Below are positions 28,142-34,293 of a stretch of DNA of 64,000 bases, in pieces. Location of the stretch: sequence record ON568341.1; one strand, written 5' to 3'. The position numbers were made by a program, and so were the translations under genes. The notes beneath the pieces are model-generated. The model saw only the letters and a program-made list of their open reading frames with translations. It did no database searches and was not told the origin of the DNA. Every line of letters starts with the position of its first letter. Positions within the stretch are counted from its first letter, which is position 1.

Positions 28142-28244
28142 ACTTGTCATAGGGTGTAGTGCAATTGCTGCATATATGATTTTTTCACCTCCAACCAATG
28201 TATTACTGCTAATTTGGGCGGTTGTTATATTAGCAGTACTTTAA
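28128..28244 (+). CDS. Small membrane peptide (38 aa, not in ORF track)
   Basis: MRLAKLVIGCSAIAAYMIFSPPTNVLLLIWAVVILAVL; GGAG RBS; ends at the terminator. Confidence 0.55.
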   Translation: MRLAKLVIGCSAIAAYMIFSPPTNVLLLIWAVVILAVL

Positions 28245-28266
28245 AAGCACCTTAGTGGTGCTTTTT
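28243..28266 (+). terminator. Rho-independent terminator
   Basis: aaaagcacc/ggtgctttt stem. Confidence 0.8.
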
Positions 28267-28301
28267 ATATTTGTGCAAATAAAAACCAATGTGACTTTTC
28301 C

Positions 28302-28343
28302 TTGATATATATCAAGAGAAATAGCCTGTTCTGACGCTATAAT
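28302..28343 (+). promoter_or_regulatory. FNR-dependent class II promoter
   Basis: Perfect TTGAT-atat-ATCAA at 28302-28315 and TATAAT at 28338-28343; box centre at -41.5 if +1 is 28350. Confidence 0.85.
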
Positions 28344-28404
28344 ATTGTCTGGTGATATTAAATATCTTCACCCCCAGATGATTTCAAAATACAAGGAATG
28401 TACA

Positions 28405-30210
28405 ATGCAGCTAGATAAATTATATAATGACGTAACGAATTTCCTAAATCAGAGTAATACAGATCTCACAAATGAAAATGCGAACAAAGATGCGAAGTGC
28501 GTCAATACACACAGGGATTTACTTGCAGGTATCCTATCTAAACATTATTCACAAGATGTTATCCCAAATGAACTAATGCAGTGGCATAATGATGGTTATG
28601 GACATATTCATGATTTAGACTACTATATCAGTCCATTAACCAACTGTTGCTTAGTCAACTACCCAGATATGCTAAAAAATGGATTTACTATTGGCTGTGC
28701 TAAAATTGAAGAACCAAAAAGTTTTAGTGTTGCATGTACAGTACTAACACAGATTGTACAAGCTGTAGCTAGTTCACAATACGGAGGTCAATCGTTGGCT
28801 CACATTGATGTCGGGTTGGAACCTTACGTTAAAAAGTCATGGGATAAACTATTAGAAAAACAAAAGAAATATAATCTAAGTGATGAATACATTGAAGAAG
28901 AATTACGAAAAGAAGTATACGATGGATGTCAAACATTACTTTATCAAACTAATTCAATGATTAGTACTAATGGTCAAGCTGCATTTATTTCTCTTAGTTT
29001 AGGTTTGAATACTTCCAAATTTGGTAAATTAATCACCGAACAGTACTTAAAAGTTCATGAGAATGGTTTAGGTAAAGATAAGATTACTCCAGTGTTTCCT
29101 AAAGTGATTTTCTTTTTACAAGATGGTATAAACATGAATACCAATGATTGTAATTATGACCTTAAACAGTTAGCTATGCGTTGTGCATCAAAACGAATCT
29201 ACCCAGACTTTGTTTCAGTTCCATTAAATCACAAAGTGACGGGAAGTAGTGGCACTGCTGTAACACCGATGGGCTGTCGTTCATTCTTAGGAAAATGGGA
29301 AGATTCAAATGGAAATGAACAATATAACGGTCGCTTCAATTTAGGTGTAGTTTCTATCAATTTACCACTAATTGCTCTTGAAAGTGCTACAGATGGAGAG
29401 TTTTTTGATAAGATAGATGAGCATATGAATATTGCATATCGTGCTCAGATGAACCGCGTAGAGCGTTTAAAAGGTACAAAAGCGAAACAGAATCCAATTT
29501 TGTTTATGGAAGGTGCATTAGCACGTTTAGATGCAGAAGAGACTATTGACAAGCTATTTTACAATGGTTATGCTAGTATTAGTATTGGTTATGTTGGACT
29601 TGTTGAATGTTCGGAAATCCTCACTGGTTCTATCAGTAAGGAGTTTTGTATGTCAGTACTGAATTATATGAAAGTAAAATGCGATGAGTTTAAAAAAGAA
29701 AGTAATATTGCTTTTAGTTTATATGGAACTCCAGCAGAGTCACTTTGTTATAAATTTGCACGTTGCATTGAAGCAAAGTATCCGTCTGTTCTAAAACGTA
29801 ATTATATTACAAATTCATTCCATCAACCAGTATGGGTTGAAAGTTCTGCTTTTGAAAAGTGGGATTATGAGGAAAACTTTGCTTATCTAAGCAATGGTGG
29901 TAATATTAGCTATGTCGAAACACCAAACTTAACAAACAACATTCAAGCACTTGAAACATTAATCAATTATGCCTATAAAAAAATTCCATATTTTGGAATA
30001 AACCAGCCTATAGATCATTGTCATAAATGTAATTTTGAAGGTGAATTCAGCGTCGATAAAAACGGTTTCCACTGTCCAGTTTGTAATAATAGAGATGAAA
30101 AATCTATGTCAGTTATTCGAAGAGTTAGCGGATATCTTAGTGCACCAAATAGTCGCCCATTCAATAAAGGAAAGCAAGATGAAGTGATTCAGAGAATTCG
30201 CCATTTATAA
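28405..30210 (+). CDS. nrdD: Anaerobic (class III) ribonucleoside-triphosphate reductase
   Basis: NENANKD, HIHDLDY, TNCC, PMGCRSFL, GRFNLGVVSINLP, CxxC..CxxC, RRVSGYL glycyl-radical motif; start moved to ATG 28405 (AAGGAA RBS). Confidence 0.95.
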   Translation: MQLDKLYNDVTNFLNQSNTDLTNENANKDAKCVNTHRDLLAGILSKHYSQDVIPNELMQWHNDGYGHIHDLDYYISPLTNCCLVNYPDMLKNGFTIGCAKIEEPKSFSVACTVLTQIVQAVASSQYGGQSLAHIDVGLEPYVKKSWDKLLEKQKKYNLSDEYIEEELRKEVYDGCQTLLYQTNSMISTNGQAAFISLSLGLNTSKFGKLITEQYLKVHENGLGKDKITPVFPKVIFFLQDGINMNTNDCNYDLKQLAMRCASKRIYPDFVSVPLNHKVTGSSGTAVTPMGCRSFLGKWEDSNGNEQYNGRFNLGVVSINLPLIALESATDGEFFDKIDEHMNIAYRAQMNRVERLKGTKAKQNPILFMEGALARLDAEETIDKLFYNGYASISIGYVGLVECSEILTGSISKEFCMSVLNYMKVKCDEFKKESNIAFSLYGTPAESLCYKFARCIEAKYPSVLKRNYITNSFHQPVWVESSAFEKWDYEENFAYLSNGGNISYVETPNLTNNIQALETLINYAYKKIPYFGINQPIDHCHKCNFEGEFSVDKNGFHCPVCNNRDEKSMSVIRRVSGYLSAPNSRPFNKGKQDEVIQRIRHL

Positions 30211-30384
30211 TATAGTATAACATGATTACCTCGATTTAACATAAATATTTAAAATTAAATCGAGTAAACTAATTATGAAATGAAAAATGAACAAAGAATC
30301 TAATTTTTTGTTCATTTGTTTATGAAATATCGTTTGATGATAGAATATTAAAAAAAACACTGAAATAAAATTAAGGAGAAATAT

Positions 30385-30744
30385 ATGTTAGAAGCTAAAC
30401 AGGTAATGTCAGGTGAACATCGTGGAACTATTTTTCTAAAAGAAGATGATGTTGTAAAAATTGTAGTATCTAAAACTTTTTCCGAAGATGATGAAGTACT
30501 ATTGAGTACTTTTGATGGTGAGGTTCTACGTGATGTACAGATCAAACATGAACCAGTAATTGAAGGTGGTCAGCATTTAAATGTAAATGTCTTATCTAAA
30601 GAACAACTCATTGATGCACAAAATAATCCAGAAAAATATCCGCAACTTACCATTCGTGTCAGTGGTTATGCTGTTCGTTTCAATTCACTAACAAAAGAAC
30701 AACAAGATGATGTAATTTCTCGTACCTTTACAAAGGAAATTTGA
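30385..30744 (+). CDS. grcA: Autonomous glycyl radical cofactor
   Basis: [10 protein letters not shown]...[34 protein letters not shown]. Confidence 0.93.
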
Positions 30745-31070
30745 TGGATTTAAAGCCAATTGTGGTTAACAAATACAAAGAACCGTATGATGTGTACATT
30801 GGTCGTGGGTCTAAATGGGGTAACCCATTTACCCATATCAATGATAAACAGACGAAAGCCGAGTTCATTGTTGCTACAAGGGAAGAATCAATCGAAAAGT
30901 TCAGAGAATACATAATTGAACGTATTTCTAATGGCGAAGTTAAAATTGATGATTTACTTGAATTAGCAGGGAAACGTCTTGGTTGTTTCTGTAAACCAAA
31001 ATCATGTCATGGTGATGTTCTCGTTGAAATAGTGAGTGCAATACTAGATGAATTACCAGACGATAATTAA
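30744..31070 (+). CDS. DUF4326-like protein
   Basis: YDVYIGRGSKWGNPF...GKRLGCFCKPKSCHGDVL. Confidence 0.8.
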   Translation: MDLKPIVVNKYKEPYDVYIGRGSKWGNPFTHINDKQTKAEFIVATREESIEKFREYIIERISNGEVKIDDLLELAGKRLGCFCKPKSCHGDVLVEIVSAILDELPDDN

Positions 31071-31518
31071 AGATGACCTTATTAATGGTGAGGGGGTGAG
31101 ATGTTCCCTCTTTGTTAGTGGGTGCAGTCATGGGTGTCCTGGATGCTTTAACGAAGTTGCATGGGATTACCGAAGTGGACAAGAGTTCAGTACTGAAACA
31201 ATTGATATAATTTTAGCTGAACTCAGTAAACCGTACATTAGTGGGTTATCACTACTTGGTGGAGATCCACTAATGAAAAAGAACATCGAAACAATTTTAG
31301 AACTATGTAAAATTGTAAAAGATACTTATCCAAATAAAACTATTTGGTGCTGGAGTGGGTATACTTTACAAGAGATTATGGTCAATCATGCCTCTCCAAT
31401 ACTGGAGTACATAGATGTATTGGTTGATGGTAAATTCATAGAAGCAGAAAAGAATTTAAAATTACCTTTTCGTGGTTCTAACAACCAACGAATTTTATAT
31501 AAAAATAAAGATTTTTAG
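31048..31518 (+). CDS. nrdG: Anaerobic RNR activating enzyme (radical SAM)
   Basis: NGEGVRCSLFVSGCSHGCPGCFN, LGGDP, DVLVDG.F, FRGS.NQR. Confidence 0.95.
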   Translation: MNYQTIIKDDLINGEGVRCSLFVSGCSHGCPGCFNEVAWDYRSGQEFSTETIDIILAELSKPYISGLSLLGGDPLMKKNIETILELCKIVKDTYPNKTIWCWSGYTLQEIMVNHASPILEYIDVLVDGKFIEAEKNLKLPFRGSNNQRILYKNKDF

Positions 31519-31521
31519 TAC

Positions 31522-31546
31522 AAAAGCACCCGTCGGGTGCTTTTTT
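31522..31546 (+). terminator. Rho-independent terminator
   Basis: aaaagcaccc/gggtgctttt stem. Confidence 0.85.
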
Positions 31547-31554
31547 GTTATGTA

Positions 31555-31562
31555 TATAAATA
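31555..31562 (+). promoter_or_regulatory. T4-like late promoter TATAAATA
   Basis: Exact motif 32 nt upstream of the tail-fibre-like operon. Confidence 0.75.
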
Positions 31563-31593: not shown

Positions 31594-34293
31594 ATGATGT
31601 CAAAGAAAATATATGGTGGATTAGATGTCACACATAATGTGACAGTTAATGGAAAAAGAACAATACAAGGTATTAACAAACAAGTGTTTGACGAAAATGG
31701 TAATATGGTGTTGGATACATATTCAAAAAATGAAATGAATGATATCATTGGTATGTTACCAATTTCACATTATGGTTCCATGAACTATCTACCTGCTGGG
31801 GTCGGTGGGGATTTCAATGGTGCATCAGAAAATCAGGCATATCGCAGGAATAAGGTATTATTGGAAAATGATGGAACACTCGTTCTTTTGCGTAGTGGTA
31901 CAAACGGTAGTGTTGAAGGTTTATATTATTCTTATTTGTCTAATGCATTAGCAGTTACTGATATGAGTCGTACAATTAACACAAGTCGTCAATACAAACC
32001 AGGATTCTTCGGTCCAAATCGTGTTGCACTTGGTTTATTTAACACTGATCAAAATATTATAATGGGGAGATATAAAGATATTTCAAACAACACAATTGGT
32101 ACATTCATTTCTATTACTAATGGTACACTTAATGATACATTACACACAGGTTTTTTTGTAAATCAAACTGATATATCACCTGAAGGTGGTGTTGAATATG
32201 CTATGATGGCAGAAGACGGTTCAATATATGTTTTTAATGTAATTAATGAAAATAATAAATTTGAAATAGCCATTGTTAAAGTTGTATTTAATGTGGATAA
32301 TGGTTCTTACACAGCAACCCGCATCACAGGGTGGACTACAAAAACATTTTATAATACTACTTATTCTGGGCAAAATAATATTGTGATAACTAATGCAATG
32401 ACGTCAACTAATATTGCGGATAAGCCTTATGTATTTGTTCCTCCGAATTTGTATGGTATGGGGATTTATATGACATCTATTGATTTATATGTTGCACAAC
32501 AACCAGGAACACAAAATTTTCGTTTCAGGATGAATGGTGACGCTTATTTCGCCATGCCAACATATAGTTCGCGTCCACAACACAATTATAGTTTCACGTT
32601 CGATATGAACTCAAAGCAATGTACATTAGATGCAGGTAACGATATTGGCTCCTTCCAAGCACCGTTGGTTATAACAAATACAGGTTCTGACTTAGTTGCA
32701 TCTGGTAATGTGTTGAATTTAGACCCACTATATGACCACAATGGATATAGAAACATTTATAGTTCATATTTTTATTTAAATTCTGGTGACGTGTTTTGTA
32801 CTGCATGTCCAAACTTAGCAGAGCCACTCGCTATGCAAAAAGCAAAGTTTCCTGTGCAAATAGTATATAACATGTTAAATGTTCGTGCTGTTATATCATC
32901 AAACTTCATAGGTGGTATCGTCCGACCATCATTTGGTTCAGCGGTTGGTTCATATATTAATGGCGTTGAACTACTTCCAGATAACAGTACTAAACAATAT
33001 TCACGAGCATCTGGTTCAGGTGGTTTTAGTCCGTCATATGCAGTTCATAAAAGTACTCCGAATTTTACATTTCAATCGTTATCATTGGGAACAATTCAAG
33101 GTTATGAACCCACCACTGAGCGTAAAAATGTAAGTGAAAATAACAACAATAGAATTTTCATTAGTACTGTGTCTGGGTCAACAGTTACAACTAATGGTGG
33201 TATTTTTATGGTCGGACAACGTTATTCACAATCACTGTCTTTTGATAAAAACTTAAATGGTACAGGTAGTATTAGTGTTTCGCAATCAGTTCTTGATGGG
33301 TTCAGAGACTCTGAATATGCTAAAGTTTTAAGTGATTGGAATTTATCTCCGCAAGCGGGTAAAGATATGACATTGTTTGTACCGCAACAAGCGGATATTC
33401 CAGCATTTGTCATGCTCAGTACAATAACTAATGATTTTAAAAACTACATTAGAATTGCTGAAGTTAATGTAAACACCAGAGTAGGTGAAATCAAATCGAT
33501 AACATTCAAGCGTTTAGTTCTTGAAAATAGATATGGTGATAGTTTCACACCGAATGTTGGCGGTTATATTGCACCATCATCTGTTGGTTTAACAATTTAT
33601 GATGGTGGTTCTTTTTATTTCATTGGCGGTTCAGATCCATTAACACATCCAACAATTGGTAATACAGCAACACACATATTTCGTGCATACGTAAACAAAT
33701 CATCTGCACAATTTGAGAGTTTTATTATTGATGGTATCCATGCGTACTATAATCAAGGCCGTCAATTCACTGCATTACCTGATATTGGATTTGGATATTT
33801 TGATACAATAGACTATGATAACAAAATGATTTTCCGCAAATGTGGAACTACTATTGAAGAATATAATAACTGGAAAGAACAAGGTAATCCAATCAACGTT
33901 GTTTCACAAGATGTTGCACAAGGATTTGTTGTTTATTTTACAGAAGAAACTCCAGTTATTCTTTCTGGTAAATCATTTACCTTACCAGTGTCAAATATTG
34001 ATTTAAGAACAATAAAGCCAAACCCAGCCAATACAACATTTCATGTATATGTTAAGTTAAAACAAGGATTAGTAACTTATCATATAACTACCGATGTTAT
34101 TTCAGAAACTGGGACAATTGCATATAATATATTGTGGATAGGAACAATTAGAACTAACGATATTCAAATTGTATCAATTGATATACAAAAACGTTCACGA
34201 TTGGATATTTTTGGTGCTTCACTTGAAGCGGCAGGGGTTTCGTTCCCAGTCAGCTACGGTCTACCATCACAAACAGGAACCATAAACTGGTAA
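31594..34293 (+). CDS. Putative tail-fibre/baseplate structural protein (paralogue 1, long)
   Basis: Late promoter; beta-rich; shares N-terminal LPIS.YG and C-terminal VSQDVAQGF...G..P.S.G.PS.G...W modules with the next two genes. Confidence 0.6.
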   Translation: MMSKKIYGGLDVTHNVTVNGKRTIQGINKQVFDENGNMVLDTYSKNEMNDIIGMLPISHYGSMNYLPAGVGGDFNGASENQAYRRNKVLLENDGTLVLLRSGTNGSVEGLYYSYLSNALAVTDMSRTINTSRQYKPGFFGPNRVALGLFNTDQNIIMGRYKDISNNTIGTFISITNGTLNDTLHTGFFVNQTDISPEGGVEYAMMAEDGSIYVFNVINENNKFEIAIVKVVFNVDNGSYTATRITGWTTKTFYNTTYSGQNNIVITNAMTSTNIADKPYVFVPPNLYGMGIYMTSIDLYVAQQPGTQNFRFRMNGDAYFAMPTYSSRPQHNYSFTFDMNSKQCTLDAGNDIGSFQAPLVITNTGSDLVASGNVLNLDPLYDHNGYRNIYSSYFYLNSGDVFCTACPNLAEPLAMQKAKFPVQIVYNMLNVRAVISSNFIGGIVRPSFGSAVGSYINGVELLPDNSTKQYSRASGSGGFSPSYAVHKSTPNFTFQSLSLGTIQGYEPTTERKNVSENNNNRIFISTVSGSTVTTNGGIFMVGQRYSQSLSFDKNLNGTGSISVSQSVLDGFRDSEYAKVLSDWNLSPQAGKDMTLFVPQQADIPAFVMLSTITNDFKNYIRIAEVNVNTRVGEIKSITFKRLVLENRYGDSFTPNVGGYIAPSSVGLTIYDGGSFYFIGGSDPLTHPTIGNTATHIFRAYVNKSSAQFESFIIDGIHAYYNQGRQFTALPDIGFGYFDTIDYDNKMIFRKCGTTIEEYNNWKEQGNPINVVSQDVAQGFVVYFTEETPVILSGKSFTLPVSNIDLRTIKPNPANTTFHVYVKLKQGLVTYHITTDVISETGTIAYNILWIGTIRTNDIQIVSIDIQKRSRLDIFGASLEAAGVSFPVSYGLPSQTGTINW

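Follow-up and report, generated by a model that had tools for sequence, protein, structure and literature searches.

A predicted class II FNR-activated promoter upstream of the anaerobic ribonucleotide reductase genes of phage UE-S1 and related jumbo phages

In Escherichia coli the regulator FNR recognizes the consensus TTGATnnnnATCAA, and in 19 of 23 FNR-activated promoters the site is found at -41.5 ± 4 (PMC3688515). The genes nrdD, yfiD/grcA and focA-pflB are FNR targets, yfiD and focA-pflB being controlled from class II promoters; class I FNR promoters are rare (PMC3688515). In the model class II promoters, i.e. those of dmsA, narG, nirB, yfiD and focA-pflB, a site between -40.5 and -42.5 overlaps the -35 element, takes its place and is combined with a good -10 (PMC3688515), the same arrangement that we predict here for a phage. 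Metabolic genes of lytic phages have likewise been placed under a host sensor: cyanophage phosphate genes are controlled by the host PhoBR system via pho boxes (PMC10976474). The subject of this work is the region upstream of nrdD, the gene for a class III (anaerobic) ribonucleotide reductase (RNR), in a 64-kb stretch of phage DNA that was analyzed as a whole and is called the window below. The window matches Escherichia phage UE-S1 (ON568341.1), an Asteriusvirus of 358 kb isolated from sewage, at 100% identity, and its coordinates correspond to those of the record minus 186,000. An earlier note, written from the letters of the window, had proposed that a perfect class II promoter of the host regulator FNR drives a phage module nrdD-grcA-DUF4326-nrdG.

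The predicted FNR box, TTGATATATATCAA at 28302-28315, matched the consensus in 10 of 10 positions and was the sole perfect FNR box in the window. It is followed after 22 nt by a -10 hexamer TATAAT without mismatch, whereas the -35 position (28315-28320) reads AGAGAA, which agrees with TTGACA in only 3 of 6 bases and leaves no usable -35. A consensus promoter scan, which requires a -35, did not call the UE-S1 nrdD promoter. The box centre at 28308.5 corresponds to -41.5 if transcription starts at 28350, as had been calculated in the earlier note, and to -42.5 if it starts at 28351. Base 28350 is a T, and the G at 28351, the more usual start base, is at least as likely to be the start; a centre at -42.5 still falls within the class II range known in E. 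coli (PMC3688515). Public runs labelled as RNA in which the locus occurs consisted of DNA-like contigs of relatives and showed no transcript starts or ends. Box and TATAAT sit between nrdD and a terminator at 28243-28265 that had been described as insulating the promoter. Its stem and folding energy confirm it as a terminator; it is conserved in Asteriusvirus, RaK2 and 7t3. Every part of the earlier class II reading that can be tested on sequence (box, spacing, -10 and protein types) was supported, and we consider FNR-dependent, class II-type anaerobic activation of the phage nrdD promoter to be probable, at about 0.8.

By itself, a perfect box was not significant, with 0.42 expected per window and at least one present in 38 of 100 shuffles. 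For a box combined with TATAAT at the same spacing, with at most one mismatch allowed, the expectation is 0.03 (3 of 100 shuffles). The window contains nine further boxes with one mismatch; these are situated in coding sequence or have no -10, and none of them shows promoter geometry. It is conservation that is the decisive evidence and that lifts the predicted box well above chance. About 35 related Asteriusviruses (121Q, PBECO4, SP27, phAPEC6 and others) match the window at 88-92%, the Klebsiella phages RaK2 and K64-1 are more distant relatives, and the named hosts of these phages are all Enterobacterales that bear FNR. The nrdD upstream regions of UE-S1, SP27, 121Q, TH47, ph0011, JNE01, A4 and RaK2 were aligned together with those of 7t3, GAP32 and ten uncultured jumbo-phage contigs, giving 18 jumbo phages that represent at least five lineages, with NrdD identities of 62-100%. 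The ten contigs were found with an NrdD alignment as the query; a single-protein query yielded three phage nrdD loci only.

Comparison with related phages, which the earlier note had named as a check, showed TTGA-N6-TCAA to be invariant in all 18 sequences, while the flanks diverged: mean identity was 96% in the half-sites versus 65-67% in the 30 nt upstream and the 24 nt downstream. Variation of the box was confined to the innermost half-site positions, with GTCAA in most Asteriusviruses and TTGAC in locus L140. The description of the box as perfect therefore holds for UE-S1 and several relatives, but not for most Asteriusviruses, which match in 9 of 10 positions. The invariant bases are those of the FNR-specific core and not of the CRP core GTGA-N6-TCAC. 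TATAAT was present at a gap of 22 or 23 nt in 12 of the 18 sequences; it is the form seen in Asteriusvirus, RaK2 and the 7t3 group, where it is often extended to TGnTATAAT; most of the others had TATTAT, TATTTT or TAAAAT. Taken together, box, 22-23-nt spacing and -10 recur in almost all Asteriusvirus, Alcyoneusvirus (RaK2), 7t3-like, GAP32-like and Serratia-BF-like jumbo phages examined.

Two further observations concern the same region. In metagenomic relatives from the runs X3/X4, positions 28245-28372, which comprise the promoter region, are swapped for 127 letters too diverged to match at 85% likeness, and the flanks match. In the GAP32/Serratia-BF-like loci L133, L135, L136, L139 and L144 (around 2425-2445) an inverted repeat TACCCC-N7-GGGGTA fills the space between box and -10. 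This repeat resembles NarL/NarP heptamers, with non-canonical spacing, and may be a site for a second factor.

The position of the box relative to nrdD was also evaluated over a larger sample. In 535 kb flanking 80 phage nrdD genes there were 16 perfect boxes, 10 of which fell into one 60-nt interval just upstream of nrdD, where 0.05 would be expected from the density elsewhere (approximately 180-fold enrichment). These ten boxes are not independent of each other; they span at least five jumbo lineages. Also among the ten are those of two unrelated, uncultured contigs of 45-53 kb (L182, 2428-2441; L184, 2422-2435), in which the perfect box lies between nrdB and nrdD in a cluster nrdA-nrdB-nrdD-nrdG-thyA-folA and is followed at a 22-nt gap by a TAnnnT hexamer, again a class II geometry. 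The NrdD of these contigs is 44% identical to that of UE-S1, and they represent an independent lineage with the same arrangement. Aeromonas phage PVN03 was considered as a cultured counterpart of L182 but rejected, since at this place its genes leave no intergenic space and there is no box. In the T5-like loci L185 (1729), L196 (1701) and L188/L189 (2403; L188 is Klebsiella phage IME260) an FNR-type box is located exactly 27 nt upstream of a TTGACA-17-TATAAT promoter of consensus sigma-70 type leading to nrdD, which puts its centre at about -69.5; in L185 and L196 an open reading frame (ORF) resembling a T5orf172 endonuclease is inserted between promoter and nrdD. In the T5-like, vibriophage-type contigs L159/L160 (2119) the left half of a perfect box doubles as the -35. 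Counting the T5-like cases, 14 of the 16 perfect boxes belong to nrdD promoter regions. A blind scan of IMG/VR for box-N21-23-TATAAT returned at least 118 loci, with none adjoining nrdD among the matches listed, a sample that was uninformative on this point. The box has been retained in five jumbo lineages, T5-like phages have it in different geometries, and T4-like phages lack it; this distribution suggests that one host regulator was captured repeatedly and independently for a single auxiliary gene.

From these features we infer FNR binding, activation and the start site, as well as a coupling to pyruvate formate-lyase (PFL) and formate, along the following lines. The UE-S1 nrdD promoter would be a phage-owned sigma-70 promoter of the class II FNR-activated type. 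In an anaerobic host, the [4Fe-4S] FNR dimer would bind TTGAT-N4-ATCAA with its centre some 41.5-42.5 bp upstream of the start and, standing in for the missing -35, would bring host RNA polymerase to TATAAT. With oxygen present, FNR would be inactive and the promoter weak, and the oxygen-labile glycyl-radical enzymes would not be made in vain; deoxyribonucleoside triphosphates (dNTPs) would then be supplied by a phage class I reductase encoded elsewhere in the genome, the 64-kb window itself holding no class I RNR genes. The transcript would extend from about 28350 to the terminator at 31522-31544 and encode NrdD, GrcA, DUF4326 and NrdG. GrcA would most likely serve as a spare glycyl-radical domain for oxygen-clipped host PFL, and this repair would keep up formate, the reductant of this type of NrdD, as well as acetyl-CoA at low oxygen. 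Jumbo phages with this promoter probably make the nrdD enzyme set only in an anaerobic host.

Several points weigh against this scheme or limit it. In the GAP32/Serratia-BF group the -10 is weaker (TATTAT or TATTTT) and in L144 none is recognizable, and since the box and a second element, TAAATA, persist there, a class II geometry built on TATAAT may explain the control only in part. T4-like phages have no FNR box at nrdD or vs.6, so that such control is no necessity. Promoters that depend on a host activator may not work after takeover of the cell by the phage. Finally, because the spacer between nrdD and grcA of UE-S1 carries a hairpin and an extended -10 (Table 1), grcA-DUF4326-nrdG may be partly uncoupled from the FNR promoter and the four genes may be driven unequally.

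The TAAATA element lies in the nrdD leader at 28359-28364. It is invariant and starts exactly 43 nt past the end of the box in 17 of 17 jumbo phages, its position being fixed although the gap to TATAAT shifts between 22 and 23 nt from group to group, and 1-3 nt behind it comes (T)TCACC or a similar sequence. A leader hairpin pairing GGTGA with TCACC folds in some Asteriusviruses, but no consensus RNA structure was obtained over 16 sequences. Nor does TAAATA behave as a general phage promoter motif, not being enriched in the window; in combination with the TCACC tail it is unique there. The element could nevertheless define the promoter, instead of or besides TATAAT, if FNR binds the box and TAAATA..TCACC (28359-28372) is read by a phage sigma factor of the gp55 type. 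If TAAATA acted as a -10-like core, the box centre would be near -61.5/-62.5, a class I position, and one would be dealing with two stacked promoters or with a host activator acting on a phage-modified polymerase. Such a reading would account for the fixed distance to the box, for the survival of TAAATA in L144 and the GAP32 group, in which the sigma-70 -10 has degenerated, and for conservation in the absence of an RNA structure to explain it; a CA dinucleotide is found 5-6 nt downstream of the motif, and for Rak2-like phages a late-promoter motif ATAAATA and a gp55-like sigma factor have been predicted (PMC5259590). The base preceding TAAATA, however, is never an A (0 of 17), so that neither ATAAATA nor TATAAATA is ever complete and the element is by motif not a late promoter of the T4 or Rak2-like type. 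The window has no second copy of TAAATA..CACC, and intergenic DNA shows no enrichment of TTAAATA. A genuine TATAAATA late promoter close by (31555-31562) differs from the element, and the rarity of class I FNR promoters mentioned above also speaks against this reading. We regard it as the main rival explanation, but as unlikely.

The palindrome might also be the operator of another protein, either a phage regulator or a different member of the CRP/FNR family, its likeness to an FNR site being incidental or the site being used for repression. Hundreds of the phage's genes are uncharacterized and may include one for such a protein, the additional inverted repeat in GAP32-like phages suggests a further factor, and the perfect box of L159/L160 overlaps the -35, as is more often seen with repression. 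Yet the invariant bases are exactly those that distinguish FNR from CRP sites. The box stands in front of the single gene that FNR activates in the host as well, unrelated phages that have nothing but the type of host and nrdD in common also carry it, and all named hosts, being Enterobacterales, possess FNR. We consider another operator very unlikely. That box and spacing are a chance AT-rich palindrome, with nrdD read from a constitutive -10 or by read-through, would agree with the number of perfect boxes in the window taken alone; it is hard to reconcile with the retention of box and spacing across genera while the flanks diverge, with the enrichment upstream of nrdD and with the low joint expectation for box and -10, and we hold it to be extremely unlikely. 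FNR-dependent, class II-type activation thus remains our preferred explanation. A broader proposal would combine it with the leader element: several unrelated phage families would use host FNR as oxygen sensor for nrdD with differing geometry (about -41.5 in Rak2-like jumbo phages, about -69.5/-70.5 in T5-like coliphages and Klebsiella phages, overlapping the -35 in L159/L160), and in the jumbo phages FNR would cooperate from a class I position with TAAATA..TCACC, 50.5 bp from the box centre, as the core for a phage sigma factor, thereby steering the phage-reprogrammed RNA polymerase. In this combined form we consider the proposal unlikely.

Features of the locus are listed in Table 1. Pfam confirmed all four genes of the module that had been named in the earlier note.

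Table 1. Predicted features of the nrdD locus of phage UE-S1 (window coordinates)
Feature	Position	Strand	Remarks
Intrinsic terminator, end of upstream unit	28243..28265	+	9-bp stem, T run, -12.2 kcal/mol, z -4.1
Predicted FNR box TTGATATATATCAA (TTGAT-ATAT-ATCAA)	28302..28315	+	10/10 consensus match
-10 hexamer TATAAT (6/6), 22 nt past box	28338..28343	+	
Predicted transcription start, T28350 or G28351	28350..28351	+	inferred from -10 position
Leader element TAAATA-N2-TTCACC	28359..28372	+	invariant TAAATA; absent from the earlier note
Shine-Dalgarno sequence AAGGAA for nrdD	28393..28398	+	conserved in relatives
nrdD, class III (anaerobic) RNR, 601 aa, no ATP cone	28405..30210	+	Pfam NRDD E 6e-166 and Gly_radical
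Structured nrdD-grcA spacer, 174 nt	30211..30384	+	z -3.3; only UE-S1 and TH47
AU-rich terminator-like hairpin in spacer	30280..30323	+	20 bp, then U-rich sequence; -14.4 kcal/mol, z -4.6
Extended -10 TG-a-TAGAAT in spacer	30338..30346	+	
grcA (T4 vs.6/Y06I homologue), autonomous glycyl radical cofactor, 119 aa	30385..30744	+	Pfam Gly_radical
DUF4326 (T4 NrdA.1 homologue), 108 aa	30744..31070	+	Pfam PF14216 E 2e-24
nrdG, radical-SAM activase of NrdD, 156 aa	31048..31518	+	Pfam Fer4_12 E 1e-51 and Radical_SAM; CSHGCPGC (CX3CX2C) motif
Intrinsic terminator closing the operon after nrdG	31522..31544	+	10-bp stem, -13.8 kcal/mol, z -4.0

The stop codon of grcA overlaps the start of DUF4326 (TGATG) and the end of DUF4326 overlaps the start of nrdG by 23 nt, which fits translational coupling of these genes. 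RaK2 (Alcyoneusvirus) has the same order of nrdD, vs.6 (GrcA), nrdA.1 (DUF4326) and nrdG; the unit is therefore ancestral and older than the split between Asteriusvirus and Alcyoneusvirus, and a recent insertion of grcA in UE-S1 was rejected on the same ground. The clade of 121Q, PBECO4 and SP27 has nrdD-DUF4326-nrdG, and judged by this gene order grcA has been lost in the 121Q/PBECO4 clade. In ph0011 and A4 the gap between nrdD and grcA measures 9-11 nt, and in the other grcA-bearing Asteriusviruses, which have this short gap, the N-terminus of GrcA differs from that in UE-S1 and TH47. An Rfam search gave nothing of note. The GenBank record of UE-S1 places the start of nrdD at a TTG at 28345, inside the promoter (621 aa), and that of nrdG at 31096. 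The ATG at 28405 and, for nrdG, the start at 31048 are better supported by relatives, by the alignments and by the Shine-Dalgarno sequence AAGGAA.

Some side observations concern the surroundings of these genes. In TH47 (L219, 320-5628) nrdD is split into ORFs of 331 and 294 aa by an insert of about 1.1 kb with a 279-aa ORF resembling a GIY-YIG endonuclease, possibly an intron or else a homing element that stands by itself, and an extra 328-aa ORF lies between DUF4326 and nrdG. More generally, the nrdD-nrdG interval in jumbo phages is a variable cargo slot (L133, 4313-5518; L139, 4299-6196), containing hypothetical ORFs and a weakly methyltransferase-like ORF in GAP32, and GrcA with three unknown ORFs in the Serratia BF-like L139. 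Right after the nrdG terminator, the perfect T4-type late promoter at 31555-31562 precedes by about 32 nt an 899-aa ORF (31594-34293; phrog_3573, without Pfam match) and separates the nrd unit from what is probably a late gene.

The proposal that NrdD is of the formate-using type agrees with its sequence. M289-G-C291, the RRVSGY motif with G576 and the four cysteines 539/542/557/560 align with the E. coli enzyme (M382, C384 and G681 for the residues concerned), so that the phage protein has the Met-Gly-Cys, glycyl radical and Zn-Cys4 motifs; overall, the phage and E. coli NrdD are 44% identical. The Met-Gly-Cys motif is the mark of the formate-using NrdD subclass. Formate is entered as the reductant of class III RNR in a review table. 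GrcA has an RVSGYAV-type glycyl radical motif and aligns with residues 669-758 of PflB (E 2e-30) and with E. coli GrcA (6OWR, E 1e-29); we therefore attribute it to the PFL type and not to the NrdD type. GrcA of UE-S1 shares 72% identity with its RaK2 counterpart, which is encoded at the corresponding position. The T4 homologue Y06I restores oxygen-cleaved PFL (Wagner 2001, cited in PMC8683613); such repair, following activation by PFL-AE, has been demonstrated for Y06I and for E. coli YfiD. With homologues in 1,588 phage records, a phage GrcA is in itself not new. The gene is found inside or beside nrdD-nrdG in three phage lineages, Asterius/Alcyoneusvirus, the Serratia BF-like L139 and L146/L148, the latter with the order nrdD-nrdG-grcA followed by two glutaredoxin-like genes. 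Because of this repeated adjacency, the idea that GrcA secures the formate supply, and with it a coupling of GrcA to PFL and formate, is plausible.

DUF4326 had been suggested to be a functional member of the module. It lies inside the predicted operon but shows no general linkage to RNR: among the best 80 viral-contig loci for DUF4326 only two (121Q and RaK2) had nrdD or nrdG within 4 kb. C81, C83 and C88-H-G-D are invariant, and the UE-S1 protein shares 78% identity with its RaK2 counterpart and 42% with NrdA.1 of T2. In T2, NrdA.1 directly precedes nrdA, so that two unrelated lineages set DUF4326 beside an RNR gene, of different classes. Five other phage lineages with DUF4326 have no RNR gene nearby, and in phiW-14 DUF4326 abuts a DUF1768/NADAR gene. 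In the Atlas, matches were confined to DUF4326 clusters, some with fusions to SLOG/YAcAr domains, and a profile search of PDB sequences with DUF4326 gave no match. Iyer and colleagues predicted that DUF4326 is a rhodanese-phosphatase-like enzyme with ADP-ribose derivatives as substrates (PMC9503650, PMC7824862). Judged by gene context, DUF4326 is a stable passenger of the predicted operon, a role in ribonucleotide reduction being neither supported nor excluded.

If the proposed control is true, lytic jumbo phages of gut Enterobacterales would read the oxygen status of the host directly via the host sensor and would switch between aerobic and anaerobic dNTP supply with it. This would have a bearing on phage replication in the anoxic gut and on phage therapy at low oxygen, and a compact promoter with a consensus site makes for an easy test case. 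In the full-text literature searched, no description of FNR control of a phage nrdD was found.

Among the closest described systems is the host nrdDG promoter, which is repressed by NrdR and, like the predicted phage unit, drives nrdD and nrdG with FNR input. There the FNR sites are two, TTGAGCTACATCAA and TTGATGCAAAGCAC, both imperfect and spaced by 31 bp, whereas the phage has one consensus site at a predicted -41.5. In work by Roca from 2008 the host sites are said to lie at -64.5 and -33.5. The host promoter further contains two NrdR boxes and has a leader of about 180 nt, in contrast to a 55-nt leader and no NrdR box in the phage. NrdR-controlled RNR promoters have paired 16-bp boxes about 31 bp apart; the NrdR core pattern with up to three mismatches had no match in 28266-28404, and the same pattern finds both host boxes. 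Capture of the host promoter was considered and rejected, the phage sequence giving no alignment with E. coli nrdDp and having no similar stretch in 5,426 complete E. coli genomes. Together with the missing NrdR box and an NrdD that is only 44% identical and devoid of an ATP cone, this argues for an independent solution. On these comparisons the putative phage promoter is an independent recruitment of FNR in which the oxygen input is retained but the dNTP-feedback input is lost, which hints that the phage wants the oxygen signal and not the host's dNTP feedback.

Compared to the model class II FNR promoters, the phage promoter differs in being located on a lytic genome, in its full 10/10 box, which is rare among natural host sites, and in having no recognized co-regulator sites. 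T4 possesses homologous NrdD (about 43-45% identity in T4-like loci), NrdG, GrcA (about 58%) and NrdA.1/DUF4326 (42%). In T4-like phages, however, these genes are scattered, with vs.6 in the vs-regB cluster and nrdA.1 beside nrdA, whereas in UE-S1 they form one terminator-bounded unit behind the predicted FNR box. The cyanophage pho case concerns a phosphate signal, another factor and another host group and is backed by expression data; the oxygen case of UE-S1 is a prediction. In summary, the promoter proposed here would join two known kinds of control, that of the class II FNR promoters and that of phage metabolic genes wired to a host sensor.

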